Made by a program: the position numbers and the translations under genes
Notes under the pieces: generated by a model
Seen by the model: the letters and a program-made list of their open reading frames with translations, nothing else
Databases searched by the model: none
What the model was told of the DNA's origin: nothing
Shown: positions 39,611 through 64,000 of the stretch, one piece after another
Layout: each line of letters begins with the position of its first letter
Position numbering within the stretch: the stretch's first letter is position 1
DNA from: Basidiobolus meristosporus CBS 931.73
Lineage: Eukaryota; Fungi; Basidiobolomycota
Direction of reading: 5' to 3'
Assembly: GCA_002104905.1 (NCBI GenBank)
Contig: MCFE01000106.1
Span: 1-64,000 of the forward strand
DNA: 64,000 bases

Positions 39611-40003
39611 TGTTGTAAATTTCGTATTGACACCTAAATATTCACCTAACCTAGTCACTTGGATCACTACCTACAAATCTTGGAGAATCCTGACGAAATT
39701 CCTTGCCAGGATTTACTTTCAATATGGAATATCAAATTTTGTTAAGTTATCCAAACACCCCCAAGATTTGCACACATGTTCTTTGCACCTTCCTTAACAT
39801 ACTCTGTGTTTTTGTCTTGCCAAGACCATGTAAAAGTATAAATATCACTTTTACATTCAATTATTCATTAAGTGAAAACAGTTGTAAGAGTTTTGGAGTG
39901 ATTGGAAGTGACTAGGAGAACAAGTTGACTATGTGGCATTCACTTGATGGCTTACTGAGTGTAAAAGAAGTACTTATATCTTTACATGGTCTTGGCAAAA
40001 CAA
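39611..40003. repeat. Two truncated copia LTR fragments in opposite orientation (39611-39880 +, 39880-40003 -)
   Basis: Homologous to the 348-bp LTR at 42161 (TGTTGTAAA..CACCTAAATATTCACCTAA..CCAAGACCATGTAAAAGTATA). Confidence 0.8.
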
Positions 40004-40543
40004 ACATTTAAATATGTTGTAAGAGCTTTGGAGTGATTGGAAGTGATTGGGAGAACAAGTAGATTGTGTGGTTCCACTTGATGATTTATTGAATGTAAAG
40101 TAGTATTTCTACTTTTACATGATCTTGACAAAACAGACCTGTAGAATATGTTCAGGAAGGCTCCAAGAACATGTGTGCAAAGTTTAGTGCTGTTTGGACA
40201 GCTTTGAGAGTTTTCATGCTTTGGGAATCTGATGCTGTGGTGAAAATATTCAAAGTGAATCACAACAAAGAATTTGGTCAGTATTTTCTAAAATTTGTAG
40301 GGAAAGATGCAAGCAACTAAGCTAAGTGAATGCCTGGGTGGAATCACAAATTTTTGCAACATACCCACTGAACTAAATAAGCATATTAACTAATCTTAAA
40401 TGTGATCTAAGACATTCAAATTTGTCTCAGCTAATGGCTTGGTAAATATGTCTGTAATCATTTCATCTATAGGTCAGTAAACTAAGCCAAGTTATTCTCT
40501 GTAGTTTCACATATTTAATGATGTCTAATTCTCATGTGCTTAG

Positions 40544-40900
40544 TGTTGCAAGAGTCTTGGAGATAATGGAAGTGACTGGGGGAACAAGTAGATTATGTGG
40601 TTTTCACTTAATGACTCATTGAATGCATTGAATGTAGAAGCAGTATTTACACTTTTACATGGTCTTGGCATGACAATCACATAGAACAGGTTGACAAAGG
40701 TCCCAAGAACGTGTGTGCAAAGTTTGGGGCTGTTTGAACAGCTTTGAGATTTTTCATGTATTGGGTTCCTGATACTTTAGTGAGAATATTCTAAGTAAAT
40801 CCCACAAGGATTTTGGCCAGTATTCTCTAGAATTTGAAGGTAATGATCTAACTGACTAAGTTAGGTGAGTATTTAGGTGAAATTACAAGCTTTTACAACA
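40544..40900 (-). repeat. Copia solo LTR inserted in the RNase H region of the older copy
   Basis: TG...CA-bounded copy of the family LTR. TSD not cleanly recoverable. Confidence 0.8.
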
Positions 40901-41264
40901 TCTGTTCTAGCAAGAAAAGAAGGATTTCTGCTCAATAGTATATATCCTTAATTATCTTCAAATATTGTAGTAGGGGCTTTTGACATAAGCCTTAGTCTTT
41001 AAAAAGCTTTCTTAGCCACATTGATTTTTTTTAGCCTCAAAGGCTGCCATATATTCAGTCTTGGTGGTGGGGAGTGCCATAATTGGGTGCTTTTTGAAGT
41101 TTCATGAAATTACCTATTTATTGTAAAGAAAGTTGTATCCAGTAGTGGACCTTCTGTCATATAAATCTTGTTTTCAGCCAGCATTCAAGTATCCCAAAAG
41201 ATCCAGCTCTGAGTCCTTACAGGTGTACTTTAAGCAAATACCAGCAGTGCCTTTTAGTATCTGT

Positions 41265-41614
41265 TGTTGTAAGAGTCTTAGAGATATTGGAAGGGATTGG
41301 GAGAGCAAGTATACTATGTGGTTTTCACTTGATGATTTATTGAATGTAAAAGTAGTATATCCACTTTTACATGATCTTGGCTTAAAAATCACATAGAATA
41401 GGTTGAGTAAGGTCCCAAGAATATGTGTGCAAAGTTTGGGGCTTTCTTGGACAACTTTGAGAATTTTCATGTTCTGGGTGCCAGATATTTTGGTGAAAAT
41501 ACTCAAAGTAAATCCCAACAAGTATTTTGGTCAGTATCTTCTAGAGTCTCAAGATAATGATCTAAGTGACTAAGTTAGTTGAATATTTAGGTGGAATTAT
41601 AAATCTTCACAACA
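41265..41614 (-). repeat. Copia solo LTR inserted at the RT/RNase H junction of the older copy
   Basis: TG...CA-bounded LTR copy. Flanks TCTGT/ACTAT match at 3 of 5 positions, a possibly decayed TSD. Confidence 0.8.
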
Positions 41615-41711
41615 ACTATAAGTCCACTTAACTGCTGCAATATTAACAGATCTGTAGTTCTAATTAAGCTGGCTAAAACCATCACCAAATATTAATATCT
41701 GGACAAGTTTC

Positions 41712-42059
41712 TGTTGTAAGAGTCCCAGAGCTATTTGAAGTGACTTGGAGAACTAGTGGATTATGTGGCTCTCACTTGATGATTTATTGAATGTGAAAGT
41801 AGTATTTATACTTTTACATGGTCTTGGCATAATAAGCACATCAAATAGGTTGAGGAAGGTCCCAGGAGTATGTGTGCAAAGGCTGGGGCTGTTTGGACGA
41901 CTTGGATAATTTTCATCTACCAGGCACCTAATGTTTTGGTCAAGATATTCCAGGTAAATCCAACAGGGGATTTGGGCAGTATTTTCTAATATTTGTAAGT
42001 AAAGGTGTAAGTGACTAAGTTAGGTGAATATTCAGGTGGAATTGCAAACTTTTACATCA
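41712..42059 (-). repeat. Copia solo LTR with perfect 5-bp TSD GTTTC
   Basis: GTTTC at 41707-41711 and 42060-42064 flanks a TG...CA LTR. Confidence 0.9.
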
Positions 42060-42160
42060 GTTTCAAGCATGGTATATATCAGACTACCAACCATAGACTG
42101 GTAAGGAAAGTCTAGTATTTTAGATGGCATCAAGAGCTCTTGATTTGGTAGAGTTCTGAC

Positions 42161-45100
42161 TGCTGTAAAAGCTTGTAATTCCACCTAAATATTCACCTAA
42201 CTTAATCACTTAGATCATTACCTTCAAACCCTAGAGAATACTGACCAAATCACTTGTTGGGATCTACTTGGAATTTTTCACCAAAATACCAGGTACCTGG
42301 AATCTGAAAATTCTCAAAGTTGTCCAAACCACCCCAGCCTTTGCACACATACTCCTGGGACCTTCCTCAACCTATTTGCTGTGCCTATTATGCCAAGACC
42401 ATGTAAAAGTATATATACTACTTTCACATTCAATAAATCATTAAGTGAAAACCATGTAATCTACTTGTCCTCCCAATCACTGCCCATATCTCCAAGACTC
42501 TAACAACAGGTTATGAGCCCCAAGCTGTCACTCTCTGCAATGTCTACTACTGCTGTTACCAAAATATTTCCCTCTGCTGAAAAGTTTGATGGATTTAACT
42601 ACCAAGTGTGGAAGGTGAAGATGAACATGCTGCTACAAGAAAGAGGCCCTTGGGGTATTGTCATGGGAGAAGAATGCTCTCCTAAAAGCATGGGAGAGGA
42701 AGCCTTAAAGTACCAGAAGAAAGAACACAGTGCCTTTAACTGCATTTGCAATAATGTTAAAGACAAATTGCTAATTCAATGCTCAAAAGCAAAAACAGCA
42801 AAGAATGCCTGGAAGGCATTAGAAGACACCTACCAGTCATGTTCAGCTGCTAAGAAAATGTATCTGGGACAAAAATTCTTTACTACCAATATGCTGCCAG
42901 GAGAAGAAATGAAAAATCTAATTAGCAGAATTACCCTGCTGGTAGATGAAATGGAATCTGTGGATTTACAAACTACTGATGAGGATGTGATAGTTGCCAT
43001 CCTAAATAGCCTGACAGACATGTTTCAGGGCCTTGTATCAGCTCTAGAGTCCAGAACTGAAGATATGACCCTAAATCACATATGTGGAAGGCTCCTGGAT
43101 GAAGAATTAAGAAAATCAAGTGCCAATAAGAAGGAAGAAGAAAATGCTTTAATAAGCAATGATAACTAACAAAGGAGGTACCCAAGACCCTACAAAGGCA
43201 ACAGCAACCTGTTTTGCAACTACTGCAAAAGGAAAGGACACACATCAGACTGGTGCCTCAAAAACAGAGATAATCAGCAAAAGAAGCCTGAATATGGAAA
43301 GCTGCAACAACTGAAGATACACTATTCATATCTGCACTAAATATGACCACAAACAAGGACTCTCTGATGTGGTATATTGACTCTGGAGCATCTCAACACT
43401 TTACACACCAACAAGAACTTTTTACTCAATATAAAGAAATTTCAATCAAGAAGGTTTTCATGGGTGACAATGGAATACTTCATGCAGTGGGAGAAGGAAC
43501 TATCCAAGTAAACCTTAGAAGCAGTTAAGGAAGCCATACACTGACCTTTAAAGAAGTTCTCTATGTACCAGAAATAGCCAAGAACCTGCTATCTGTAAGC
43601 AAGACCACTGCAGAAGGACTTAATTTCAGCTTTGACAATTCTGGATGCAAGATCACTGATCAAAATGGTGCCCACATTGCCTTGGGTATCAGAGATCAGA
43701 ATATATACAAGTTAACTTATACTTCATCATATTCAGAAGCCAATAAAGGTAACTTAAATGAACAAACATCAATGCTTTGGCACAGGAGATTTGGACACAT
43801 CAATTTTGATTATTTGCACAAAATGATCAAGATCAGCTAATTTCCGCAGTAAAAACTGATCCCCCAGCTGATTTGGAGCAATGTGAAGCCTGCATATATG
43901 GGAAGCAAGCCAGACAGCTGCTCAAGAGCTCTGGGTTGATCAAAACTAAGAAAAAATCTGATCTAATTCACTCAAATCTGTGTGGACCTATGCAGAATTT
44001 ATCCTTAGGTGAGATGAAGTATTTAATCACTTTTATTGATGATTATATAAGATACACATGGGTTTACTTTATGATGAGAAAGGAAGAAGCTCTGTCTAAG
44101 TTTAGGAAGTTTAAAGCCATGGTAGACCAAGAAACTGGTGAAAAAATCAAGAAAATATGCTCTGACAATGGTGGAGAACATACCTCAAACCTCTTCATCC
44201 ACTGCTGCAAAATTCATGAGATAAAGCAAGAGGCTACTGTACCATACTCCCCACAGCAACATAGAGTAGCAGAATGTGCAAACAGATCAGGAAATGATTT
44301 GGCAAGATCTATGATCCATGATCAAAATTATCCTATGATTTTTGGGCAGAATCAGTTGCCACCGCTGTGTACCTTAAAAAAAGGGGTTATAACAGAATAC
44401 TTTGTGATTCTACTCCACTTGAAGCATGGTACGGGTACAGACCAGGTGCAGAATATCTAAGAATATTTGGGTGTACAGCATATGCCAACAAACTGCCAGG
44501 AACTCATTTCAAATCTGAGCCAAAAAGTGCAAAATGCATATTTTTTGGCTACTGCAATGAGAGTAAAGCATTCAGACTCTACAATACCAAAGCAAAGAAG
44601 CTAATCCAGTCCAGGGATGTGTTGCTTGATGAAAATTCAAAATTTTCACAAAAAATGGCATCAGATGATTACAAACATCTGATCTCAAGTCCACAAATTG
44701 TCAGGATTGAATCAGAGCAAAACAATGAGGATTTTCTCACTCCAGAGGACCCTACAACCATGGTTCTAGCTGAATCAGTGCCCAGAAATATCCCAGAAGT
44801 GATCATTCCAGTATCAAATGCTGGGAGATCCAATTGGACAAGAAATGGCCCAAATTACTGTATCATTGAGGGTACAAACTTAGCCTATGCCTATTCAGTC
44901 CATACTGATGAGCCCCAGACTGTAAAAGAGACCCAAATAGCCCTCAGACAAAGTTTTGGAGATCTGCAATGACTGAGGAATATCAGGCTCTGATGGAAAA
45001 TATAACTTGGGACTTGGTCAATTACCAATCAACCAAAAATCAATTTGATGCAGATGGGTCTTCAAGACAAAAAACAAGGCTGATGGTACAATTGAAAGAT

Positions 45101-47042
45101 ACAAAGCAAGACTTGTGGCCAAAGGATACTCTCAAACAAAAGGACTTGACTTTCCTGAGACCTTTGCAGTGGTAGCCAAGTTTAATTCCATCATATTATT
45201 ATTGGCTATTGCAGCCAAATGTAAGTTTTTTATTCATTAAATGGATGTAAAAGCTGCACTTTGGAATGGAGAGCTTGATGAGGACATGTACATGGACAAG
45301 CCTGATGGATTTGTTGACCAAGATAACCCCCATTTGGTCTGAAAGCTCAAAAAGTCTCTATATGGCCTCAAACAATCACCAAGAGCCTGGAATTGCAAGA
45401 TAGATTTGTATTTGGAATCTCTGATTTTCTAAAGGAGTAATGCTGACTATAGTATATACTCTAAGCCAGATAGAGCTAGCCTAGTTCTAGTAGCTCTATA
45501 AATGGATGATCATATTATAGCCACCAATAATCTAGCAACACTGGAAGAGACTAAATCCAGCCTATCTGAGGAGTTCAAGATGTCCAATCTAGGAGAACTC
45601 AGTTACTACTTGGGATTATGTTCTCCATAGACAGAGGTATCCAGACTATCACCCTAAGCCAGTCCAAGTATATTCATGTTATACTTAAGAAGTACCAAAT
45701 GGAAGACTGCAAACCTGCAGATACCCCAATGGAGACAAACCTTAACTTGATCAAAACTCAACCAAATCAAAAGAGCTTGGTGCCATCTGAAAGCCCCGAC
45801 TTTCCTTATCAATCTATGGTTGGCAGTTGATGTATTTTATGCTAGGACCACATCCAGATAACTCATTTTCAGCACAAGTTGTCTGCCAGCATAATTAGAA
45901 CTGTGGATTGGATCATATTGTAGCAGCTAAGCAGATAATTAGACACCTAAAAGGAACTGATTATATCTGCTTAAGATACACTTATAAGGACTTAGAACAG
46001 GATCTTGTGGGATACTCTGATGCTGATTGGGGACCAAATCTAGTATATCATGCTTGGAACATGTCCAGATATCTCCTATTCAGTAGGAGTTGTCAGCCAA
46101 TATAATCAGAACTATAGATCTGATCATATTGCAGCAGTTAAGCAAATTTTTAGATACCTAAAAGGGAACTGCTGATATCTGCTTAAGATACAATTATAGG
46201 GATTCAGAACAGAATCCTGTGGGATACTCTGATACTGATTGGGTTCAAAATTTGGAAGACAGAAGATCCACCACAGGATACACCTTTCTTTAATGTAAAG
46301 GAGAAGTTTCATGGAATTCAAGAAAGCAACCAACTATAGCACTTTCTACCACAGAGGCAGAGTATATGGCAACCTGTGAGGCTACAAAAGAAGCAATGTG
46401 GTTAAGAAAACTTTTTACAGATTTAGGCCTATGTCAAAAAATGTCTATTACTTTATATCAAGATAATCAAGGATGTATACAATAAGGTAGAAATCCAACT
46501 TTTCATGCTAGAACTAAGCACATAGATATTAGACATCATTTCATACATGAAACTACAGAGAAATACTTTGCTTAGTTTAATGTCCTTCAGAGGAAATGAT
46601 TGCAGACATATTAGCCAAACCTTTAGCTAAAGACAAGTTAATATCTTAGGTCAAAATTAGGACTAGTCAGTATGAACATTTAGCTGAGTGGGAGTGTTGT
46701 AGGATTTGTAATTCCACCTAAATATTCACCTAGCTTAGTCACTTAAATCATTACATTCAAATCCTAGAGAATACTGACTAAATTACCTGTTGGGATTTAC
46801 TTAGAATATTTTCACCAAAATATCAGGTACCTGCAACATGAAAATTCTCAAAGTTGTCCAAACAGCCCCAAACTTTGCGTACATGCTCTTGGGACCTTCC
46901 TTAACCTATTCTATGTGCTTGTTATGCCCAGATCATGTAAAAGTATAAATCCTACTTTTACACTCAATGAATCATCAAGTGAAAACCACATAATCTACTT
47001 GTCCTCCCAATCACTTCCAATATCTCCAAGACTCTTACAACA
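42161..47042 (+). mobile_element. Full-length, degenerate Ty1/copia (Ty5-like PBS) LTR retrotransposon, 4.9 kb
   Basis: LTRs 42161-42508 and 46695-47042; TSD CTGAC (42156-42160 and 47043-47047); PBS GGTTATGAGCCC 42509-42520; gag (KFDGFNYQVWK, UBN2-like, CCHC remnant); protease (WYIDSGASQH); GAG-pre-integrase (WHRRFGH); integrase (IHSNLCGP, FIDD, SDNGGE, ECANR); RT ([20 protein letters not shown]); RNase H (YSDADW, RTKHIDIRHHF); PPT GAGTGGGAG 46686-46694. Many stops and frameshifts. Confidence 0.95.
42513..43169 (+). pseudogene. copia gag (N-terminal part still open)
   Basis: ORF AEKFDGFNYQVWKVKMNMLLQERGPWGIV...AKTAKNAWKALEDTY; the ATG lies inside the PBS. Confidence 0.85.
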
Positions 47043-47270
47043 CTGACAAAGTCAAGGTTTGTCTCCACCTGGGTAGCTATTGGCCTACAGTCTACCATTT
47101 GAAGCATCTTATGGACATCTTGAATATCATTAGACTGGCCCAAGGGATGGTCTTGGTACCTCAGTTTATATTCCTATAAATATAATTTGGTCCTGCAGGT
47201 GGATCCAATCTGGATCAGCCATCAAGATCCTGTCAGGAGACTGCTATAATACCAGCAGCTTGGAATTAAT

Positions 47271-48555
47271 AGACTTGTTCTGTTGGATAGTGCCACATAG
47301 TGCCAGCCTGTTTATGTTGCTGGCACTATCTGGCACTATAATTTTACCATAATACCAGTGGTAGGATATAGTTACTGATAATTATACTCAATCTTACTTA
47401 TGTTGCTCAGAGTAGTGCTTTCCTTGCTTTATTTACTCTTCATAATGCTCCAGACACATTTCTCTTAGTGGATGTCTTCTTGTATGAATATACTGTGCAT
47501 TGATAAGTACCTTAACTATTTTACCTATTCTGCTGTTTTCTCCTATATATGACTTTCCTCTGTATTTACCTGTCAATATGCTAAATCTCTTCAGATATCC
47601 AAATGTATGCTCCACCCTCACTCTGAAATGATGAAATATCTCATTGTAGAGCTTCTGCTTCCTGCTAGCACATCATTCCTTGGCTTCCTATAAGCTGTAA
47701 TACATCCTAATCTCTGACAATCCTCTCCTATATAAGCTAAGTTGGCCATACATTTCTCCCTGCTACTGAATTCCGGATGATTCTCTACCCAGAGTGCTTT
47801 ATCATGCCTTCTTCCAGCAAATGGCCTACTAAACCAGATGATGTTACCCTTAATGTCAGACAGTGCTTGAAACTTCACAGAGTGTGCCTTGTACCTGCCA
47901 GAATAAAAGCACCTCTGCCCTCTAGAAGGTCTGTTAATCCTGACTGGGAAGGTATCCAAAATACTCCTTATATGGAACCTGTTGCGGAACACTCTGGGAT
48001 ATGGAAGTCTATTGGAGCTTCTGAACCTAGTACTCCAAGCTTGCTCTAAGTCATTCATACCCTCTGCAAGGTAGTTCTCCATTGCTGTCAGCTGGGAATG
48101 AAAGCTTCTAGGACTTTTGTTGCCATGGATGGTGATATGAAACCTTGTAGGGAAATAGTTCTTGTAGTAGCAGAGAAGCTTAACAAGGGATCTCCTTGAG
48201 TATATTGGGGTATATGGACCACAGTACTTGGTATAGATCTCCTCTAATGTGTCAAAAGGAAATTCAGTGGTAGTGGTGGGATTGATGAGAAATGACCATT
48301 CAGATGAGTAAGTCATATTAGAATTGGTAAGGATTGGGCTGAGATGATTTGATTTGATTTGGCACAATCAGCTTTATTTATCTTATTTTCCATGCATTAT
48401 AACTAAATCTCCATCAATTGCTATGTATCCCATCATTATGTTGCAAAAATCATGCTCAAACAATGACTGGGTATTTTTATTGATGTTTTACTCACAAGTC
48501 TATAAACAAATAGGAAATCTGCAAATGATGTGATCTGATCTGTGTCAATGCAATC
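47271..48555 (-). mobile_element. PHIS-superfamily (IS5/PIF-Harbinger-related, DDE_Tnp_4) DNA transposon copy 1, truncated at the right
   Basis: Terminus AGACTTGTTC at 47271 preceded by AAT; transposase remnant ILDTFPVRINRP..FYSGRYKAHSVKFQALSD..FAGRRHDK..TAYRKPR..RVEHTFGYLKRF with a frameshift near 47620. Confidence 0.85.
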
Positions 48556-49039
48556 CAAGATGCATTATGCATAATGTATGGAAAATTCAACAATCACATT
48601 AGTTTTCATATATATTTCATATAAGACCAGGTTGATGCCAATACACCACTGCATAAGCATTCAATTCCATCACTATGGTCCCTATACCAAGTCTCAACTC
48701 ATCTTTAGTTCAACCCAGACAAAACTCATCCCCCAGCTCACAAGCGCAGTCCAGACCAGAAAAGAAAATGTCTGATCCATTTGAGTTCTTACCAAATGCT
48801 TTCAGTAGGGCCTAAGTGTCTATGATGAGCCTTCATACAGATATTTGGGCACTACTCATTAATCTAGCAGGACTAGATACCTCAGAGAGCCAACAGAGAT
48901 GAAGGAACCTGAGTAGAAAGCTGTGGCATGAGTTCTACATCAAGATGCCAGCAGATGTATGAACAAAGATATATAACAGGACAAGTATTGAAATCAAGGA
49001 TGAGCTGAGAGTGAGAGGATTTGAAGAGGAAGCCACATA

Positions 49040-51543
49040 ATCAGAAATTATCCTATGATTTTTGGGCAGAATCAGTTGCCAAAGCTGTATACCTTAAAAT
49101 AGGAGTTATAACAGGTTACTTCAAGATTCTACTCCATTTGAAGCATGGTATGGGTACATACCAAGTGCAGAACATCTAAGAATATTTGGGTGTGTAGCAT
49201 AGGCCAAGAAACTGCCGGGAAATCAGCCAAAACTTGAGCCAAAAGGTGTAAAATGCATATTTTTGGGCTACTGCATTGAGAGTAAAGCATTCATACTCTA
49301 AAATATCAAGGCAAAGAAGCTAATCAAGTTCAGGAATGTGTTATTTGATGATGATTCAAAATTTCTACAAAAAAAGATATCAGATGTTAACAAAATCTGA
49401 TCTCAAGTCCACCAACTGTCAGGATTGAATCAGAGCAAAACAGTGAAGTTTCTTCTCACTCCATAGGACTCTAGAATCATGGTTCAGCCTGAAGAAGTGC
49501 CCAGAGATATTCCGGAAGTGACCATTCTAGTATCAAATGCCCAGAAATCCAACCAGACCAAATTTTAATATTTATGAGGGTGCAAACTTAGCCTATGCCT
49601 ATTCAGTCCATACTGATGAGCTCCAGACTGTAAAAGAGGCCCTAAATAGCCCTCAGACAAAGTTTGGAGACCTACAACAGCTAAGGAATATCAGGTCTTA
49701 ATGGAAAATCAAACTTGGGACTTAGTCAAGTTACCAATCAACAAAAAATCAATTGGATGCTTGCGGTCTTTAGAGCAAAATACAAAGTTAATAGTACAAT
49801 TGAAAGATGCAAAGCTAGACTTGTGGCCAAAGGATACTCTCAAACAAAAGGACTTGACTATATGGGGACCTTTGTACCACTAGCCAAGTTTAATTCTGTC
49901 AGATTAATATTGGCCATTGCATCCAAGCATAAGTTTTTATACATCAAACAGATGTAAAAACTGCATTTTTGAATGGAGAACTTGATAAGCATGTGTATAT
50001 TAACCAGCCAGATGGGTTTTTTGATCAAGATAATTCTCATTTAGTCTGCAAGCTTAGAAAGTCTCTATATGGACTCAAATAATCACTAAGAGCCTGGAAT
50101 TGCAAATTAGATTCTTGTTTGGAATCTTTGAGTTTCCAAAGGAGTAATGCTGACTATAGTATATACTATAAGCCAGATAGAGCCAAACCCAGTTCTAATA
50201 GCTCTGTATGTGGATCATCATATTATGGCAGCCAATAATCTTAAAACACTGAAAGAGACTAAATCCAGCCTATCTGAGGAGTTCAAGATGTCCAATCTAT
50301 GAGAACTCAGTTACTACTTAGGAATAGAGCTCTTCATAGACAGAAGTACCTAGACTATCACCCTAAGTCAATCCAAGTATATTCAAGATATACTAAAGTA
50401 CCAAGTGGAAGACTGTAAACTGGCAGCTACCCCAATGGAGACAAACCTTAACTTGGTCAAAACTCAACCAGGTCAAGAGAGCTTGGTGCCATCTGAAAGC
50501 CCTGACCTTCCTTATCAGTCTATAGCTGATTGTCCGTTGTATATCATGCTTGGACTATGTCCAGATAACTTGTATTCAGAGCAAGGTGTCAGCCAGCATT
50601 ATTAAAACTATGGATTGGATCATATTGTGGCAGCTAAGCAGATAATTGACACCTCAAAGGAACTGCTTATATCTGCTTAAGATACACTTATAAGGATTTG
50701 GAACAGGATCTTGTGGGATACTCTGATGCTGATTGGCGCCCAAATTTGGAACACAGAAGATCCACCACAGGATACACCTTCCTTTATTGTAAAGAAGCAA
50801 TCTCACAGAATTCAAGAAAGAACCCAACCATAGCACTTTCTACCACTGAAGAAGATTATATGGCAGCCTGTGAGGCTAAAAAAGAAGCAAAGTGGTTAAG
50901 GAAACTTTTTTGAGATTTAGGCTTATGTCAAAAAGCACCAATTACTTTATTGCAAGATAATCAAGGATGTATACCATTAGGTAGATATCCAACTTTTCAT
51001 GCTAGAATTAAGCACATAGATATTAGACTCCATTTCATATATGAAGCTATAGAGAATTACTTGGTTTATTTAGCTTAGTGTCCTATAGATGAGAGGATTG
51101 CAGACATATTAACTAAACCATTAGCTAGAGACAAGTTGGAATTTCTTAGGTCAAAATTATGACTAGTCAGTACAAGCATTTAGTTGCGTGGGAGTGTTGT
51201 AAAAACTCATAATTCCACCTAAATATTCATCTAGCTTAGTGATATAGATCATTATCTTCAGATTCTAGAAAATGCTGACCAAAATCCTTGTCAGGGCTTA
51301 CTTAGAATATATTTGCCAAAATATCAGGCACCCAGAAAATGAAAATTCTCAGAGTTGTCTAAACAGCCCCAAACTTTGCACACATATTCTTGGGGCCTAC
51401 CAAAGCCTATTCAATGTGTTTGTTATGCCAAGACCATGTAAAAGTATAAGTACTACTTTTACATTCAGTAAATCATTAAGAAAAAACCGCATAATATACT
51501 TGTTCTCCCAATCACTTCCTATATCTCCAAGACATTTACAGCA
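49040..51543 (+). mobile_element. 5'-truncated copia copy (integrase C-term, RT, RNase H, PPT, 3' LTR 51195-51543)
   Basis: Collinear with 44322-47042; [37 protein letters not shown]; multiple nonsense codons. Confidence 0.9.
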
Positions 51544-53251
51544 GCTTCCACTACTGCCATGTATACCTCCTGAACATTTGCAAAGAACCTTTTGGTATTG
51601 GGCCAATATGTTCCTTCTCCCTAATGGCTTCTAGTCCCCCTTACAGGTGCAGTCTGGCTCTTGTTTGTGTGAATTCCATATTGAACAGTGTAGAAATGGG
51701 CTTGTGACCAAGAGAAATCTGGCTTACCTTGGTTGAGCTTTGAGTTGCTCTGTTCAATAGTCACACAGAGTACCAGCCTGTTTATAGTGCCAAATTGATC
51801 TGGCACTCTATGGCACTATCTGGCACTATAATTTCTATCAGAATGCCAGTGGTAGGATAAAATTACTGGGGATTTTATTTAATCCTACTTTTGTTACTCA
51901 GAATAGAGCTTTCCTTGCCTTATTTACTCTTCATAATGCTCCAGACACATTTCTCCCAGTGGATGTCTTCTTGTATGAATATACTTTGCATTAATAAGTA
52001 TCTTAGCTATTTTACCTATTCTGCTGTTTTCTCTTGTTACAAGTCTTGGTATAAGAGTTGTAGAGGAATAGGGAGTTTAGCTAGTATTGTATTCACTAAA
52101 ACTTGAACTGATTTTTATTGAGGTTCCAGCAGCTCCTTATATACATTTTGCCAGATCATTTGCTGACTAATTGTATTTCCTAATGTAGGCTATGGCTGAT
52201 GACTCATTTGATTGCATCATCATCACCCAATTAGATCCTACTTGATACAACTATTTCTGTCTGATAAGGATCTGCTAATTCATCTGCTGACTAATACTAC
52301 TGATTTGATAGATAACAATGATGTACTGATAGGCTAAACATAAAACTAATTGATGTAACTAAAAACTGATCTAACTTAAACATTCAGGCGGTAGATCATA
52401 ACATTCTCCCCCACTAAAGTTGAGAGGGTTCTCCTGAATATCTTTTCTTGTGATACTAATACCTTGATGGTTCAGTATTGTCAGCAAGTCTTGCAAGCTT
52501 GAGTCTGTCTCTATGAACTAAATCTTCCCAGATATTCCCTTGTTTATCCACTAGTTGGTAAGTTGCAAATGGACATTCTCTGATAATCTTGAATGGTCCT
52601 CTCCATTGTGGCTCACACTTCTTCGAAGTGTTGTTTCTTAGCAATACAAAGTTCCCAACTATCAATGCTTCTGGTGCTATAGTCTTATCAAATCTCTGCT
52701 TCATCTTTTCTGCACTTTGAGATACTTTGGCCTGTGCCTCTTGTTGTCTTTGTTCCAATTGCTGGTGTCTACTGGGCTGACTAAGTTCATATTCTAAGGC
52801 ATCTGTAAGCTTGGGTTGTGTGAAATCTCCTGGAATCTTTAGTTCACATCCATACACTAAGTAAAATGGTGATTGTTGAGTAGTGTTGTGTACTCTAACT
52901 CTGCAGGTAAAAAGTGCTTGATCTATATACTCATCCCATCTACTGACAGCTCCATTTGCATACTTGGCCAGCATTTCTCCAAATAATCCATCAAAGCGTT
53001 CAGTGACTCCATTAGTTCTGGGGTGATATGCCAAGGTTTTCAAGTGTTTAATCTGCTGCATTTCCAGGTAAGCCTCTAATGTCTTTGCCATAAAGTTTGC
53101 TCCTCTATCAGATAAGATCTCCACAGGGCATCCAAACTTCATCAGGATCTCATAATAAATGAAACTTGCAACTTCTTGTTCACTGGTTATTGGTAAAGGT
53201 TTAGCAACTGGCCATTTAGTGGCATGGTCAATTGCTACTAGGATCCGGTGG

Positions 53252-54322
53252 TGTGGTGGTGTATAGGTCCAAGGGAGAGATACGTCCAATACTTCTCAAG
53301 TGTTTTGTGTGTGGGGTGTTCACTGGGTGCAATAACCTCTGGCAAAAGCTTGCTAGGAATACTTGGGTTCTGTCTCTAATCTAATGTGAAGGGGAATAAA
53401 GCCACAAGCTTGTCAAGGGAAAGCTATTGATCTACAATCCCCAACTTAGTTGGCGTCTTAACAAAAGTATGTGCCGGGTTCAGCGTCCTTTGAGATGACA
53501 ATGTACTAAAGCTTCCAAAGTCAAAACAACTGTAAACTCCACCAGCAGGGACTTGATAAGAATGCAGCTGTGGTCAATAGTTACAAAGACAGAAAAGGAT
53601 CTTTGCCTGTACAAGAACAAACTTGGGAAAGAATCAAATATAATAAAAGATACCTACTCTGAGTATTCCTTACAAGTAGTGCCTCCAAGGTCAGTTGGCT
53701 GTCAGCGGGGTTTCCTGGGAGTGTCCTGTGGTCTGGGGTTGGAAGTTCAGGTAGCAGCAGGTAGCAGTGATCACACTAATCAACAAGTCGGTATATTGAT
53801 AAAAGGGATGATGATTTATTGTTGAGGGATAGCCTCCCTTATATACTATTCTTACTGGCTAAGTGATTACTAATCATGGTGTTCCAGAAGGTTCTGGATA
53901 TCAATAGAAATCTTAATGACATCAGAATGACCTAAGAATGTTCTAAGTAGGTGCCGGAAGGCTCTAGGAGGCACAGCACATCCAACTAAGCAGGAATCAG
54001 TATTCTGAAACCTGTGTAACATGGGGATACCATATATGGTATGGAAATGGTAGGGATGGTGACATGGGTTGATCATGTGTCATGGGTACTGGCGCGGGTA
54101 CTGGCCTAATATAGAAGTACTTATAGCTAGTAATCTTACATAAAGTGAGGGGTAACTTATGCAATAAGGTAAGCAGGTGTGATAGTCAACTGGCTTATGG
54201 GATAGTACTGATTGGGTAAAACAAATGGGATAAAACTAAAATAAGTGTAGTAGAGATATAGGGAAGTAGAAAATAAGGGAATGAGCACATCTGTCAGTGG
54301 GTGTCACTGTCACCCCACTACA
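53252..54322. repeat. 1071-bp solo LTR of an unrelated LTR element inserted in the gypsy integrase
   Basis: Splits LPTTRKCNR|ILVAIDHATKW; termini TGTGGTGG...CCACTACA (TG..CA with short inverted repeat); 4-bp flanks GTGG/GCGG differ by one CpG transition. Confidence 0.75.
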
Positions 54323-56148
54323 GCGGTTGCATTTCCTGGTGGTTGGGAGTCTTCCAATAAAGTCAACTCCCCATCTCTCAAATGGTCTTCCAGGCTCCAA
54401 AGGGAAGAGGTCAGCAATTCTTTGTGGCTGGCCTTGATTGATTTGGCAGTTTGGGCATGTTTTCATTAACTTCTCAATATCCTGTTTCATTCTGGGCCAC
54501 CATGCTCTGGCTTTCACAAGGCTATAGGTTCCTTCAATCCCAAGATGTCCATATCCATTGTGTAGCTTATGTATTAAATCCAGGCAAGCAACATAAGGAC
54601 AATAGGCAATAGGGCTTCCATCAACAATTTGGTAGAGTGTTTCATCCTGTATAACAAATTTGCTGGCTTCATCCTGGATTATCTTCTTGATATCTTCATC
54701 CACCTCATTAGGAATGGCTTGGTCCTTCAAGTACTTTGGTAATAGGCTAGGCCAATCTGATTCATGCACCAAGTTGAGTTGTGCAACTTAATCTAATCTT
54801 GATAAGGCATCGGCAACTGTGTTGTTTTTTCCAGGGCAGTAGACAATCTCCAAGTCTAATTGCTGAATGTATTCACTTCATCTTGTCACTCTTCTAGAGA
54901 GTACCTTCTGAGTAAATCTATACTTGAGGGAGGCATGATCAGTCTTCACAGTGCGTTTGACTCCTTCAATATAGCATCTCCATGTCTTCAAACAGTGTAT
55001 TACAGCAAGCATCTCCTTGTCATGGACTGGATAGTTTTGTTCTGCTGAGTTCAGTTTCTTGGATTCAAAGGCAACAGGGTAGTCCTTTCCCTTATGTTCT
55101 TGGCTCAGCACTCCACCAATTGCATAATCTGAACCATCTGTGCACAGAGTGAACTCTTTTCTGAAGTCTGGTATTCTTAAGCTTGGCAGCTTAGCAAGTT
55201 CATTCTTGAGCGTCTGGAAGGCAGTCTAATAAGCTATGTCCCACTTGTTGGTATTGTCTTTCTTGAGGCTATCAGTTAAAGGGGCAGCAATACTTGCAAA
55301 CAACTTGACAAATCTCCAATGATAGGAAACCATTTCAAGGAATGATCTGAGCTCTGATATGCTATGGGGCTGCTTCAGATTCTTGATTACTTCCACCTTC
55401 TTAGGGTCTGAGGTTACTCCTGTGCTAGTCACTATGTGTCCCAAATATTCAATGTGTTCCTTGAAGAATTCACAATTGGGTAGCTTGCCATAAAGCTTGT
55501 TCTCTCTTAGCTCTTCAAGACCTTTTCAATGTGCACCAAGTGATCCTCTTCTGTCTTGCTGTATATCAGTGTATCATCTAGGTAGATTATGACAAACTTG
55601 TCTAAGTACTACTGGAAGACAGTCTGCATCAGGGTCATGAAAGTTGCAGGGGCTTTGGTGAGGCCAAAACTCATGACTAAGAACTTGTAATGTCCAAATC
55701 TGGTCCTGAATGCTATCTTAGGGATGTCTTCTGGCTTCACCCTAATCTGGTTGTATCCTGACATGAGGTCAATCTTGCTGAAAATAGTGGCTCCAATGAG
55801 TTAAGCCAAGAGCTCAACAATCTAAGGTATGGGGTACTTATACTTCATGGTAACTGAGTTGAGGGCTCTGTAGTCAATGCACATCCTAAGTGTTCCATCC
55901 TTCTTCTTCACAAAAAGTACTGGTGCTCCCCAAGGTGACTTGCTGGGTCTGATATATCCTTGCTCCAGTAACTGATCTATTTGTCTCTTCATCTCTTCCA
56001 ACTCCAATGGACTCATTCTGTAAGGTGTCTTACTCACTGGAGGGCTATCTCCTGTTTCAATGGCATGATCCACATCTCTGACTGGTGGTAGGCTTACAAG
56101 CTCTTCTGGAAATAAGTCTGAATACTCCTTCAAAAGAGTCTGGACCTT

Positions 56149-57528
56149 CTAGGGTACTGGAGTCAAGGAATCCTCCTGTAATACTGCCATGAGGAACATC
56201 TGGGTGCCTTTTCTTAGTGCTCTACAGAACTGTGTCTTGCTAAGCTCACTTGTCTCACACACACTGGAATTAACCAAGCTGAAATCCAGTCTGGCAGGTA
56301 ATAGCTCATAGGTCTTGTTGTCCTTCTGGATATGAGTAGCATGGGTTCTCCAGTTGATTGATGGATTACAACAAAATAGCCAGGTTTTCCCAAGTACAAG
56401 GTCAAACTTGCAGTTCCTAAATATATAGGCCTGTAGATCTTCTTCATAGTCATTGATCTTCATCCTTACTGGCTGAGTAATATGGTTTATTATGTGAGAG
56501 TTCCCATCAGCTGCTGAGACTGAAGTAGGTTTGGTAGGTTCTGAGTTGATTCCAGCTTTCAGAGCAACTTGCTCTGACATGTACTCATGCAATGCTCCTG
56601 AGTCAATCATGAACTTGGCAGGTACTCCATTAATTACACCATTCAAGTATAATAGCTTTCCTGAGCTTGAGGCCATCTGGGATAGGTATTCTTCTGTCAT
56701 GTGGAAGGTGAGTTCTGAGTCTTCTTCAAGTTCATTCTCCATATTACTATGCTCCATGGCCTCAATACGGTTAAAGGTTCTTGATGGCTGGTGTCCATTT
56801 CTTCTCTTAGGGCAGTACCTTGCAATATGTCCTTGCTGGTGGCAATTGAAGCAAAGTCCTTTCTTCTTACATTCTTCTGAGGTAGGATTCTTCTGCATAG
56901 CGTCTATTTCCATTGGCACTGCTTCTGATTGTCTTCTTTCATAGTGATTGTAGCCTCTATGATTAGTCATTGTTGGCTTCCCAACTCCAAACATAGCTGA
57001 GTCATAGTCAATGGCAATCTTGATGGCTTCTTTGATAGTCTGAGGTCTTTGATAATTCACTTCCTTACAAGTTCTTTCTTTCAACCCATCAATAAAGTAT
57101 TCTACTTGATCCAGAGGGTCCATTCTTTCAATTTGCCCAAGTAGACATCTACATTCAAAGATGTATTCTTGGACCATTCCTTTTTGTCTGAGTATCTTCA
57201 ACTTTCTTCTTAGTAGTGTCTGTTGGTGTGGGGGCTCAAAGGCATCCTGAATTTCCAACACAAACTCAACCCAGGTAGAGATTGTAGAGCATCCCATCAT
57301 AGTGGCTGACCCGCTCTTGTTGTGGTACCACTGCAAAGCTGCATCTGCCAGGTAAGAGGCTGCATAATGTAACTTGCTTTCTGGAGCAACTCCTTTAGCC
57401 TTGAAAGCTTCTTCAATCTGGAAGAGCCAAGTTCCCAGGTTTTCATTGACTCTATCATGGTACCGGTTGACCTTCACGCTAAAGTTGCTCTTGACAGGGT
57501 TTTGTTGGCTTTGAGCCATGGTAGTCAT
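56149..57528 (-). pseudogene. gypsy gag-protease, 459 codons open, in frame with RT across a single TAG
   Basis: Retrotransposon-gag domain, PMEID motif, CCHC knuckle, aspartic protease. Confidence 0.9.
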
Positions 57529-59512
57529 TCCTTGTTACTGCTGGTCCAGGACTTGTTGCATAGCATTCTTCCATTCTTGAGCTTGCAACATCTTGAGGGA
57601 GGCTTCTTCTTTCTTCAGGAGGGATGTTTCTGGTTATTGCTGCTACCAATTTTACAAGTATTGGTATAAGAGTTGTAGAGGAATAGGGAGTTTAGCTAGT
57701 ATTGTATTCACTAAAACTTGAACTGATTTTTATTGAGGTTCCAGCAGCTCCTTATATACATTTTGCCAGATTATTTGCTGACTAATTGTATTTCCTAATG
57801 TAGGCTGTGGCTGATGACTCATTTGATTGCATCATCATCACCCAATTAGATCCTACTTGATATAACTATTTCTGTCTGATAAGGATCTGCTAATTCATCT
57901 GCTGACTAATACTACTGATTTGATAGATAGAACTGATGTACTGATAGGCTAAGCATAAAACTAATTGATTTAACTAAAAACTGATCTAACTTAAACATTC
58001 AAGCGGTAGATCATAACACTCTTATATCTGACTTTCCTCTGTATTTACCTGCCAATATGATGTATCTCTTCAGATATCCAAATGTATACTCTATCCTCAC
58101 TCTGAAATGAATAAACATCTCATTGTAGAGCTTTTACTTTCTGCTAAGAACACCATTCCTTGGCCTCCTATAAGCAGTAATACATCATAATCTCTGACAA
58201 TCCTCTGCTGTAAAAGCTAAGTCTGCCATGCATTTCTTCCCTGAACTGAATTCTGGATGATTCTCTACCTAGAGTGCTTTGTCATGCCTACTTCCTGCAA
58301 ATGGCACACTAAACCAGACAAAGTCACCCTCAATATCAGACAGTGCTTGAAACTTTACACAGTATGCCTTGTACTTGCTAGAATAGAAGTACCTCTGCCC
58401 TCTAGAAAGTCTATAAATCCTGACTGGTAAGGTATCCAAAATACTCCTTATATGGAACCTGTTGCTGAGCACTTGGGGATATGGAAGTCTATTAGAGCTT
58501 CTGAACATAGTATTCCAAGCTTGCTCTAAGGCATTCATACCCTCTGCAAGGTGGTTCTCCATTGCTGTCAGCTGGAAATGAAAGCTTCTAGGACTTTTGT
58601 AGCCATGGATGGTGGGATGAAACCTTATAGGGCAATAGTTCTTGTAGTAGCTGAAAGGTTAAAAAGGGACCTCCTTGAGTAGACTGGGGCAGATGGTCCA
58701 CAGTACTTGATATAGATCTCCTCTAATGTGTCAAAAGGAAATTCAGTGATAGTGATGGGATTGATGGGAAAACACCATTCCAATGAGTAGGTCAAATTAT
58801 AACTGGTAGGTGATTGGTCTGAGGCAATTTGAATTGATTTGGTGCAATCAACTTTAGTTATCTGATCTTCCATGCATTATGACTAAATCTCCATCAATTG
58901 CCATATATCCCATCAATATGTTGCAAAAATCATGCTCAAACAATGACCTAGTAATTTTATCAATGCTTTACGCAGAAGTCAATAATCAAATAGGAAATCT
59001 GCAATTGATGTGATCTGCTCTGTGTCAATGCAATTTGCACAGTACAGGCCAGATGCATCTGTTTTTGCTTCAACTTTGGGAATCAAACAGACTTTGAATG
59101 AGTTTTTGCCACAAATGACTAACAAGCTACACAATATATTAGGAGAGCTAAGTGGCTTCCAAGAGCAACATACACAAGACTCAGCCAGACAACAGTTCCA
59201 AAGTATTAGACAGAGGGTAAGTCAATACCTTGAGAAATCCAGATTGCACCAGCATGCCTGGCTGGATTCCTTACTATCCTTTGCCACTTCAGCATGCCAG
59301 TGCATGTCAGTCTAAGCTACAACAACACCCTTCACAAGAGCACCCTGCATTAAGTCAGTGGGTGTTGGGTCAATGTGCATGCTTTAGAGCAAAACCACCA
59401 GAACTTGCCAACCTGCTCATCTGGACACAAGTCCATTGAAGTGGGCCAAGTCACATCCACAAGCAGCATCACTTCAACCCCAGCCAGGGGTTATGCCAAC
59501 ACATCAAGTTGC

Positions 59513-59646
59513 ACCTGCATATGCTGTTACTCCTGATCATTAGCAAGTTACCTCTGCTGAACTAACTGATGATGACCTGCATATGCTGTTACTCCTGAGC
59601 ATCAGCAAATTACTTCTGGTGAACTGTCTGATAATGACCTGCATGA
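59513..59646 (+). repeat. About 2.2 copies of a 62-bp tandem repeat inside the putative ORF2 region of PHIS copy 2
   Basis: ACCTGCAT recurs at 59513, 59575 and 59637; the units ACCTGCATATGCTGTTACTCCTGA.CAT.AGCAA.TTAC.TCTG.TGAACT are highly similar. Confidence 0.8.
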
Positions 59647-60382
59647 AGTGCCTCCACAACCAGAGCCTTTGGCAAGTAAAAGAACATGTCAGCATGTAGC
59701 ACTGCAGGCTGGTTCAGTAGCATCATCCAGAGCAGTTAAGTGTGGCCAAGCTGCAGCATTGCACTCATCAACTAGGAGGCAAAATACTGACAACAAATAC
59801 ACAATTAGCCAAGATGATAGTCAGCAAGGAAGTAGTTTGGGTGTGCAAAGTGAATCACTACAAAACACTTCAGTAGTAATACCTATGAGAAAAAAGCTAG
59901 GAGAAGATGATGCAATTACATCAAATTGCTATTATTCATCATCATCCAAACAACACATTTTTTTTGCAATCCAAATTGAGCCGTTGTAAATCAGTGATCA
60001 CTAAAATTTGATATAAGTAATACCATGGTTGTCTTATATTTGAGACAGAACCCCTATAAATAAGCACCCTGCATATATCATCTGTAACACCAGTGCAGCC
60101 ATTTGATCTGTATTGCACCTACCCAATTGGGTGTGTGCTAGCTATGACACCTTGTCCAATCATTGAGATCAGGGATTTACTTGCTCAATGAGAAAAATGG
60201 GATATTTGATGGCAAATCAGGTAGCTTGTGTATTGGTCAAAGAGCCAATTGGGGGCAGAAAGCTTCAAGATATTTTTGGACCAATTAACCATTGAGATAC
60301 CAGCCAATTGGAGTGATGGTAGCCAAAATGGTAAGTATCAGTGTACTTTATAGTGTGATATGCATTTACTTCAATTTATATT

Positions 60383-63030
60383 AGACTTGTTCCATTACAA
60401 TGTGCCAGAGTGCATGGCACAATCCGCAGTATTAAGAACAATTGGGTGCAATATTATAGCTACCAGTAGGCAGGATTGTTCTTGGACAATTTTGCACAAT
60501 GTGGGACAATCTTGCATGCTATGGGACAATCTGACACAATGAGGTTGGCATGGATGAATGTGCCAACTTGTAATGTTTGCATCATGTGCGCAATTGGATA
60601 CTGCCATTATGGTGGGTAAAATCCATTATTTGGATATGATTCTTTGATGTAAATGGAAATGAATGCATATCACACTATAGACTACACTAATGCCTACCAT
60701 TTTGGTGACCATCACTCCAATTGGATGGTATCTCAATGGTTAATTGGTCCAAAAGTATTCTGAAGCTGTCAGCCCCCAATTGGCTCTTTGACCAATACAC
60801 AAGCTACCTGATTTGTCATCAAATATCCCATTTTGCCCATTGGGCAAGTAAATCCCTGATCCTAGTAATTGGCAAGGTGTCATAGCTTGAATGCAACCAA
60901 TTGAATAGGTGCAAATCAGACCAAATGGTTGCACTTGTGTAACTGATGATGTATATATATGCAGGGTGGTAATATATAGCGGTTCTGTCTCATATGTGAG
61001 ACAACCTTGATATTACTTTTATCAAATTTTAGTGATCACTGATTTATAATGGCTCAATTTGGATTGCAAAAAAAATGTGTTGTTGGATAATGATGTATAG
61101 TAGCAATTCAATGTGATTGCATCATCTTCTGATAGGTTTTTTTCTTACAGGGATTACTACTGAAGCATTTGGTAGTGATTCACTTTTCACACCTAAACTA
61201 CTTCCTTGTTGACTATCCTTCTGACTACTTGTGTTATTGTAGTTAGTATTTTGCCCCCTAGTGATGCTGCTTGTTAACGTAACTTGGCCCACTCCAATGG
61301 ACTTGTGTCTAAATGAGCAGTTTGGCATGTTCTGGTAGTTTTGCTCTGACACACTCAAGTTAACCTGATACACAATGACTCGATGTAGGATGCTCTTGTG
61401 AAGGGTGCTGGTGTAGTTTGCACTGATGTGCGTTAGTGCACTGAAGTGGCAAGGGATGGTAAGGAAATCAGTGGTGCATGCTGGCACAATCTAGACACTG
61501 TTGCTTCTGGTATGTATTCTTCCTCTTGAAGCTCACCATCAGATTCCTCAAGGCATCAACTTACCCTATGTCTGATTCTTTGTAACTGATGCCTGGATGA
61601 GTTCTATGTATATTGCTCTTGGAAGCCACTTAGCTCTACTAATATATCACATAATACATTAGGCATTTGAGTCAAAAACTCATGCAAAATCTCTTGGATT
61701 CCCAAAGTTAAGGCACAAAAAGACACATCTGGCCTGTACTGTGCAGATTGTGCTGACACAGAGCAGATCACATCAATTCCAGATTTCCTATTTGATTATA
61801 GACTTGTGTGTAAAGCATTGATTAAAACACAAGTCATTGTTTAAGAATGATTTTTACAACATAATGATGGGATACATGGCAATTGATGGAGATTTAATCA
61901 TACTGCATGGAAAATCAGATAACTAAAGTTGATTGCACCAAACCAATTCAAATTGCCTCAGACCAATCACCTACCAATTTTAATTTGACCAACTCATTGG
62001 AATGGTCTTTTATCATCAATCCTATCACTACCACTGGATTTCCTTTTGACACACTAGAGGAGATCTATTCTAAGTACTGTGGACCATATACCCCACTCTA
62101 CTCAAGGAGATCCCCTGTTAAGCTTCTCTACAACTATATGAACCATTACCCTATAAGGTTTCATCGCACTATCCATGGCAGCAAAAGTCCTCAAAGCTTT
62201 TATTCCCAGCTGACAGCAATGGAGAACCACCTTGCAGAGGGTATGAATGCCTCAGAGCAAGCTTGGAATACTAGGTTCAGAAGCTTCAATAGACTTCCAT
62301 ATCCCAGAGTGTTCAGCCACAGGTTCCATATAAGTAGTATTTGTACACCTTCCCAGTCAGGATTAACAGACCTTCTAGAGGGCAAAGGCACCTTTATTCT
62401 GGCAAGTAAAAGGCACACTGTGTAGAGTTTCAAGCACTGTCTGACACTGAGGGTAATATCATCTGGTTTAGCAGGTCATTTGCAGGAAGTAGGCATGACA
62501 AAGCACTCTAGGTAGAGAATCATCCAGAATTCAGCTCAGGGGAGAAATGCATGGCAGACTTAGCTTTTACAGCAGAGGATTGTCAGAGATTAGGATGTAT
62601 TACTGCTTATAGGAAGCCAAGGAATGTTGTGCTTAGCAGGAAGCACAAGCTCTACAATGAGATATTTATTCATTTCAGAGTGAGGGTAGAGCATACATTT
62701 GGATATTGGAAGAGATTTGCCTATTGGCTGGTAAATACAGAGGAAAGTCAGATATAAGAGAAAACAGCAGAATAGGTATAATAGTTAAGATACTTATCAA
62801 TGCACAGTATATTCATGCATGAAGACATCTACTCAGAGAAATGTGTCTGGAGCATTATGAAGAGTATATATATCAAAAAAAGCACTATTCTGAGCAACAT
62901 AAGTAAGATTAAATAATATTATCAGTAAAAATATCCTACCACTGGCATTATGGTAGAAAATATAGTGCCAGATTATTCTGGCACTATAAACAGGCTGGCA
63001 CTAGGGAGCACTATCCAACAGAACAAGTCT
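60383..63030 (+). mobile_element. PHIS transposon copy 3, both ends intact (2648 bp), coding regions degenerate
   Basis: 10-bp TIRs AGACTTGTTC / GAACAAGTCT; TSD ATT at 60380-60382 and 63031-63033; transposase remnant 61907-62830 on +; divergent ORF2-like region on -; subterminal GTGCC/GGCAC motif arrays. Confidence 0.9.
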
Positions 63031-63466
63031 ATTATAGAAAGATATTCAAACACCCATTTTTATCTGCCATAATAGCGGTATCTAGACCTGCACATGATGC
63101 AAACATTACAAGTTGGCGCAAACATCTGTGCCAACCTCATTGTGTCAGATTGTGCCATAGTGAGCAAGATTGTCCCATATAGTGCAAAATTGTCCAAGAG
63201 CAACCCTGCCTACTGGTATCTAAGATATCACACTTAATTGTTGTTGATAACCATGGACTGTGCCACATGCCCTGGCATGGCATGATTGAACAAGTCTTTT
63301 TCCTAACAACAACTAGTTGCTGGTTACACCCAACCCAACTTTGCATTACTTAGCTGATTACTCATGTATTGGAGCTGCTTAGCTTCTTAATGCCATAGGC
63401 ATAGATGTCTCCATGTGCACATTTGTCCTCAGTATTTTTCAACTCTTCCTGGCTGTACCTCATATG

Positions 63467-64000
63467 TCAACTCATTACATCCATGACAGACTTGAAGGCA
63501 ATATTCTTGATGAGATTGGGATATGGTAGTACCTGTAGCTTGATACGTCTTGCTATCTCCCTACACATATGCCCCATAGGAAACTCCCAACAGGTGAAGC
63601 AAGAACCAATATTCTTAACACACCAAGCAAGTAGCAAATAGATACAATAGCAGCAGAGATCTAAACATTGAGCTTTATGTTTGAAGTATAGCAGCTCAAA
63701 TTCTGTCACAAACTCGTTGCAAAAAAGCTGCATATGTATCAAGTTGTCATTGGTAATCCACTTCTGGATAACTATTCCTACAATGCCCACATATTACTCC
63801 CAATGCTTCCAATGTACTCTTGGCAGCAATGACTACAAAACACCACTTGAATAAATACATATCTACTTCATCCAGTCTTGGCATTTGTATTCTTGCATAA
63901 GCATATGAGTGTTGATTGAAGCCTGTAAGAAGTAATTAAGGTAGCAGATACTCTCTAATATCTTGCCAATTATTTCAAGTTTCTCCAGTATCTCAAAGGG
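63467..64000 (-). mobile_element. CACTA/EnSpm (Tnp2-type) transposase remnant
   Basis: EFELLYFKHKAQCLDLC...VKNIGSCFTCWEFPMGHMCREIARRIKLQVLPYPNL resembles the fungal EnSpm block FERLYYQ..IHALLH..GPVWAYWAFPMERYCG.L...IKSRR.PYANL. CpG-depleted and degenerate. Confidence 0.65.

Follow-up and report, generated by a model that had tools for sequence, protein, structure and literature searches.

The window analysed here, a 64,000-nucleotide stretch of Basidiobolus meristosporus CBS 931.73 (assembly GCA_002104905.1, contig MCFE01000106.1, positions 1-64000), comprises a genic part (1-39300) and a nest of transposable elements (TEs; 39700-64000) in which about 94% of CG pairs are gone. We found that this loss is restricted to repeats and specific to CpG, that the CpGs decayed partly in place, and that decay follows a rule set by the base directly 5′ of the C (position −1). 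The nest and its left edge contain the following features (LTR, long terminal repeat; ORF, open reading frame; o/e, observed/expected ratio of CpG).

37237-38972, minus strand: ALG3-family host gene, the last one ahead of the nest (gene call; 72 CpGs, o/e 0.75)
38973-39601, no strand: unique spacer from the last gene to the first repeat (o/e 0.61)
39602-39879, plus strand: first repeat, a copia LTR family fragment (self-BLAST), with CpGs at 39623 and 39694 and then a 1016-bp CpG-free gap
40015-42059, minus strand: cluster of four copia LTR copies at 40015-40361, 40544-40900, 41265-41614 and 41712-42059 (self-BLAST; 2 CpGs, o/e 0.03)
40905-41257, minus strand: copia internal fragment inside the LTR cluster (self-BLAST)
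42161-47042, plus strand: copia element 1 (Pfam, self-BLAST; 5 CpGs, o/e 0.028)
42161-42508 and 46695-47042, plus strand: LTRs of copia element 1, 87.5% identical
42513-43169, 43873-44460 and 44367-44972, plus strand: gag, integrase and SH3 domains of copia element 1 (Pfam)
47267-48555, minus strand: PIF/Harbinger copy A, with a degenerate DDE_Tnp_4 ORF at 47618-48367 (Pfam; 2 CpGs, o/e 0.04)
49036-51543, plus strand: copia element 2, 5′-truncated, 3′ LTR at 51195-51543, 84% identical to element 1 (self-BLAST; 7 CpGs, o/e 0.08)
52037-58022, minus strand: young gypsy/Ty3 element (Pfam, LTR comparison; 23 CpGs, o/e 0.09)
52037-52407 and 57652-58022, minus strand: gypsy LTRs, 97% identical, 11 differences
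56149-57528 and 52456-53289, minus strand: gypsy gag-protease ORF and integrase, within 52037-58022 (Pfam)
58023-59473, minus strand: PIF/Harbinger copy B, with a DDE_Tnp_4 ORF fragment at 58269-58562 and its other end at 51742-52035 (1 CpG, o/e 0.017)
59766-60381 and 60647-61266, no strand: unclassified inverted repeat pair, 86% identical, low in CpG (self-comparison)
61260-63034, plus strand: PIF/Harbinger copy C, in the opposite orientation to copies A and B (self-BLAST; 4 CpGs, o/e 0.057)
63035-64000, no strand: more repeat DNA, reaching the end of the window, of which 63058-63297 repeats 60383-60621 (4 CpGs, o/e 0.11)

The nest extends past the window end at 64000. Pfam matches bore out the copia, gypsy/Ty3 and PIF/Harbinger (PHIS) elements named in the initial annotation, a model's reading of the same letters, whereas the CACTA element that it also named found no supporting Pfam match in the nest. 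PIF/Harbinger copies A-C are 83-88% identical to one another, and copy B is split by the gypsy element, its halves lying at 51742-52035 and 58023-59473, which indicates that the nest grew by elements inserting into older elements. For the gypsy gag-protease ORF, an exact look-up gave no recorded match; word-index protein searches returned no Basidiobolus proteins similar to the gypsy or PIF proteins; and with the PIF ORF as query, an exhaustive search of representatives matched only short metagenome or Logan contigs. The TE genes of Basidiobolus are evidently without annotation in public assemblies, so the context test described below was confined to the one window.

When the two parts of the window were compared, the genic part was found to contain 1504 CpGs (o/e 0.738) and the nest 53 (o/e 0.057), against about 920 expected in the nest after correction for composition. 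In 2-kb bins, the o/e was 0.62-0.89 throughout the first 40 kb and 0.01-0.14 throughout the rest. CpG-free gaps reached 1947 bp in the nest and at most 173 bp in the genic part; the stretches 41898-43845 and 44432-45797 contained no CpG. These counts agree with the estimates of the initial annotation, which had given about 52 CpGs for the nest, CpG-richer genes to the left of 39.3 kb and CpG-free stretches of more than 1 kb. Meanwhile, GpC was unchanged (o/e 1.08 in the nest versus 1.05 in the genic part), TpG/CpA rose to 1.33 from 1.18 in genes, and apart from these and CpG all dinucleotide shifts were at most 20%. The unchanged GpC indicates that base composition alone does not account for the loss. 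All CpG contexts in the nest were depleted, by 70-98%, and TCG was not alone in this. All nest elements lay at an o/e of 0.02-0.11, with equal depletion in non-coding LTRs, dead fragments and coding parts.

The drop begins at the first repeat (39602), and the unique spacer before it still has an o/e of 0.61. This coincidence of the sharp edge with the repeat boundary shows that the loss is confined to repeats and does not spread into unique DNA. About 93 kb of further genic DNA, five loci from B. meristosporus and B. ranarum reached via paralogues and orthologues of an M13 peptidase and used as controls only, was without deep depletion, with an o/e of 0.35-1.08 in 1-kb bins. In two of these control loci, AT-rich intergenic stretches (L002:7001-10000, L005:4001-6000 and L005:12001-13000) had intermediate values of 0.35-0.5; these could be what is left of very old repeats, or plain AT-rich spacers.

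The sequence context of the surviving CpGs was then considered. Eight of the 53 survivors contain TCG or CGA and 26 are flanked on both sides by C or G (S-CG-S), in line with the roughly 7 and 26 of 52 reported in the initial annotation. The expected TCG/CGA share was 0.52-0.54, close to the half assumed there, whether it was derived from the NCGN spectrum of neighbouring genes, from base composition or from the local NTGN+NCAN pool (binomial p=1 × 10⁻⁸ to 4 × 10⁻⁸ for the three baselines). In the same comparison, a term specific to T improved on a plain A/T-flank term (p=0.001-0.01). Only the −1 base was biased (p=2.6 × 10⁻⁷); positions −2, −3 and −4 matched the pool (p=0.46-0.95). The restriction to −1 argues against regional GC content or the stability of the duplex as what spared the S-flanked survivors. 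Two other sources were also rejected. Target-site duplications of CpG-targeting LTR elements were ruled out by eye, the nearest survivors lying 18 bp inside the gypsy LTRs, and general TC deamination of the APOBEC type was ruled out by TCA, TCC and TCT, which were not depleted (ratios 1.07-1.16). Five of the nine plus-strand GCGG survivors (52389, 54324, 58004, 60980 and 63076) share an (A/G)GCGGT hexamer in unrelated elements; this recurrence is probably chance, positions −2 and +2 not being significant overall.

Aligned copies of the elements revealed how the CpGs had been lost. Homologous copies display the transitions directly, as in GAACGTGTG at 40710 compared with GAACATGTG at 40167, an example pair from the initial annotation that proved real, with the second member shifted from its given position of 40170. 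At the same aligned site, CA in one copy faced TG in another 104 times, versus 7-48 times for each of the seven other adjacent double-transition types, indicating that the same ancestral CpGs were lost independently, on either strand, after the copies split. We used the CG/decayed-to-TG/CA ratio to estimate that about 0.04-0.11 of CpGs survived per lineage at 11-13% non-CpG divergence, and that CpG dyads in old copies decayed, roughly, 35-60 times as fast as non-CpG sites on average, a factor of the same order as for methylated CpG in mammals. Among inferred ancestral CpG sites, S-CG-S sites retained a survivor more often (11/21) than other contexts (7/49; p=0.002).

The same alignments bear on a rival reading, in which the elements are intrinsically CpG-poor, through selection to escape silencing or through CpG-poor masters, and no host process is ongoing at the locus. 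The common ancestors of the copia and PIF copies were estimated at an o/e of only about 0.25-0.5, and the young gypsy element was already CpG-poor at insertion: the 11 differences between its LTRs include none at CpG, and the single LTR CpG is kept in both. Together with the o/e of 0.09, this indicates that part of the depletion was inherited along active TE lineages. However, non-coding LTRs and dead fragments are depleted as much as coding parts, the independent TG and CA outcomes at the same sites record decay after the copies split, and four unrelated superfamilies show the same level of depletion and the same −1 base rule. Intrinsic CpG poverty thus fails as a sole cause, a role for which we consider it very improbable, and fits as a contributor to the decay by methylation proposed below.

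To express the context rule as rates, we used an additive equilibrium model. A CpG decay rate 35-60 times that of non-CpG sites, together with a TG/CA pool of 3845 sites, roughly places the 53 CpGs close to mutation-decay equilibrium, and the model was therefore fitted to the survivor contexts, with rates given relative to a C or G flank (kS=1) and with bootstrap intervals. For the nest it gave a kT of about 16 (6.6-42) and a kA of about 2.8 (1.4-6.2), with kT/kA=5.8 (95% bootstrap 2.1-16) and a T-specific term beyond the A/T term (p=0.0005). Two disjoint subsets agreed, the gypsy element alone giving kT 18.7 and kA 2.5 and all other nest sequence kT 14.0 and kA 3.0. In genes, the same model gave kT 0.77 and kA 0.89, without a significant difference. 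The flanking-base preference postulated in the initial annotation is thus present at −1 only, with T far above A and A above C and G, and in the nest the survivor contexts put TCG/CGA loss above that of other NCG contexts.

The alternative that AT-rich repeats hold few CpGs by composition and that the survivor contexts are sampling noise could appeal to the lower GC content of the nest (0.39 versus 0.455 in the genic part) and to there being 53 survivors only. It is refuted by the o/e, which corrects for composition, by the GpC control, and by a context bias of p about 10⁻⁸ against three baselines that recurs in two disjoint subsets, and we give it practically no credence.

We also examined the nest for repeat-induced point mutation (RIP), since the initial annotation had called the pattern RIP-like. 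Under such a process, proposed for Pucciniomycotina, a homology-sensing premeiotic hypermutation would deaminate (T)CpG in any duplicated DNA. The target trinucleotide is indeed the one that Horns et al. 2012 (PMC3318451) gave in their TpCpG rule; these authors argued that no dependence on the 5′ base is known for ordinary methylation. The published listing for the strain also includes two Dim2-like proteins from the DNMT1 superfamily of methyltransferases (PMC10538959). The context effect fitted here, about 16-fold, seems larger than that of spontaneous 5-methylcytosine (5mC) decay in mammals, which would likewise favour such a process. Classical RIP is recognized by a TpA/ApT above about 0.89 and a (CpA+TpG)/(ApC+GpT) below about 1.03, and mutates duplicates of at least about 400 bp and at least about 80% identity. 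The nest had values of 0.83 and 1.53, the opposite of Neurospora-type RIP. Along the copies, no strand runs of TG or CA outcomes were found; the two were interspersed (z between −1.5 and +1.4). In the young gypsy element 23 CpGs are still present, and CpG accounts for none of the 11 differences between its LTRs.

Duplicated host genes, which the initial annotation had proposed to check, turned up by chance in a tandem array on another contig, MCFE01000308.1 (L005:6754-20299), which comprises four intronless M13 peptidase genes of 2028 bp (675 amino acids), all intact. Their DNA identity of 87.5-95.5% lies in the same divergence range as that of the TE copies, but they were not hit: their CpG o/e is 0.64-0.65, with 53-72 CpGs common to each pair and 0-4 TG/CA sites, so duplication as such is not the trigger. 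Furthermore, TCG/CGA were the least variable CpGs in these duplicates, at 34% (16/47) versus 58-68% (28/45 for other CpGs; p=0.012), the reverse of the pattern in repeats, which may reflect codon constraints. The lack of a T effect in these duplicates and in the gene controls indicates that the T rule is specific to repeats. The RIP-like label was therefore dropped, and a RIP-like process is, on these data, an unlikely explanation.

The M13 peptidase, a bacterial-type family, is expanded in Basidiobolus. The intronless copy in the window (29131-31146) has its best named relatives in B. ranarum (71%) and B. meristosporus, and the relatives listed outside Basidiobolus are mostly bacterial or metagenomic, with one chytrid. 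The order YccF/Na-Ca exchanger, protein kinase, NDUFA12 and M13 peptidase is kept between window positions 19600-31146 and B. ranarum JASJQH010000337.1, which ends right after the M13 peptidase and so gives no view of the nest region.

Collectively, these data are probably best explained by TE-targeted CpG methylation followed by decay of 5mC to T, with a strong preference for TCG. We infer 5mC as the cause from the footprint together with the published gene inventory. For strain CBS 931.73, DNMT1 (ORX99839), UHRF1 (ORX90637) and two Dim2-like proteins (ORX98566 and ORX84408) are listed in the source data of fig. 1 of Funabiki et al. 2023 (PMC10538959), along with two DNMT2, two HELLS and one CDCA7F, and DNMT3 and DNMT5 were undetected in that strain. 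A TE-targeted, sharply bounded system would keep the nest densely methylated at CpG, or would have done so for a long time in the past, and methylated C would turn to T at a much higher rate than other bases change. At about 6% of the CpG expected, the elements may by now be close to mutation equilibrium; lineages of active TEs already arrive CpG-poor, and resident copies keep decaying in place. The decay rate of a C depends strongly on its single 5′ base, with T giving about 16 times and A about 3 times the rate after C or G, leaving mostly S-CG-S and some ACG. Candidate origins of the T rule are a flank preference of the methyltransferase, enzyme-assisted deamination or context-dependent T:G repair.

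Several points weigh against decay by methylation as described. The context statistics come from 53 sites in one window, and the pattern had been chosen post hoc in the initial annotation. In the aligned copies, T-type and A-type ancestral sites retained a survivor alike (4/25 and 3/24; T versus non-T p=0.25), in a small sample. The 5mC column for B. meristosporus is blank in the published table from which the DNMT gene set was taken (PMC10538959). Mouse DNMT1 favours CCG and disfavours GCG (PMC7381644), which does not match the nest pattern and leaves the methyltransferase-preference route without direct support.

A more specific possibility is an enzyme-driven mutator acting on methylated TE DNA in Basidiobolus, with a T-C-G target rule and a deamination step that is either catalysed by a methyltransferase or carried out by a dedicated deaminase, and which, unlike RIP, is independent of duplication. 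We hold this only tentatively. If it were true, the rule would be the same as that of rust and smut fungi, and TpCpG genome defence would either be far older than Dikarya or have arisen twice. Of the repeat-targeted system outside Dikarya suggested in the initial annotation, the restriction to repeats, the CpG specificity, the flanking preference and the occurrence in Basidiobolus were upheld, and homology-dependent RIP was not. The most fitting label is a new lineage in which methylation-linked CpG decay takes its TpCpG-biased form.

Summaries of early-diverging fungi usually describe them as abundant in N6-methyladenine and almost lacking in 5mC (PMC13297926). A nest at 6% of expected CpG beside genes at 74% argues for long-standing, strong TE-targeted cytosine methylation in Basidiobolus. 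As B. meristosporus is culturable and has a long-read assembly and a small listed DNMT set (DNMT1 and two Dim2-like proteins, no DNMT5), it could ease the separation of methylation preference, deamination and repair as sources of the rule. In annotating this genome, TE ages estimated from divergence will come out too high because of CpG decay, and each CpG that survives points to a specific sequence context.

When the nest was compared with known systems, classical RIP, as in Neurospora and other Ascomycota, where it depends on RID, was similar in that repeats gain C-to-T transitions and become AT-richer. It differs in that the target in Basidiobolus is CpG and not CpA, the RIP indices are negative, host-gene duplicates are untouched and there are no strand-clustered mutation runs.

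Methylation-driven decay of TE CpGs, known from vertebrates, plants and many fungi with DNMT1 or DNMT5, shares with the nest a depletion of CpG only, an excess of TpG/CpA, a restriction to methylation targets and a rate tens of times the background, and the DNMT1/UHRF1/HELLS set is listed for this genome. The nearest-neighbour rule in Basidiobolus is much steeper (T about 16 times S), and we infer 5mC here from the footprint. In the mammalian 5mC signature, TCG is the least mutated CpG context, the opposite direction to that in the nest. For TEs of fungi, a CpG signature has been described by Amselem et al. 2015 (PMC4352252). Searches of the literature available for this analysis found nothing tying Basidiobolus to bisulfite data or to TE CpG loss.

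In the Pucciniomycotina genera Microbotryum, Puccinia, Melampsora and Rhodotorula, Horns et al. 2012 reported RIP-like hypermutation of repeats with a TpCpG bias, leaving undecided whether it reflects a RIP-like process or an unknown property of methylation (PMC3318451). There, as in the nest, C-to-T loss in repeats centres on CpG and is in addition strongly biased towards sites preceded by T, and single-copy genes are without it. Basidiobolus differs in lying outside Dikarya, in having all CpG contexts depleted by 70-98%, and in sparing duplicated host genes, so that homology dependence is unsupported; its evidence consists of survivor contexts and not of per-site rates on large family alignments. 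To our knowledge, descriptions of the T-before-C footprint of CpG loss have so far come from rust and smut fungi alone. The T-CG rule of the B. meristosporus nest matches this Pucciniomycotina signature of 2005-2012.

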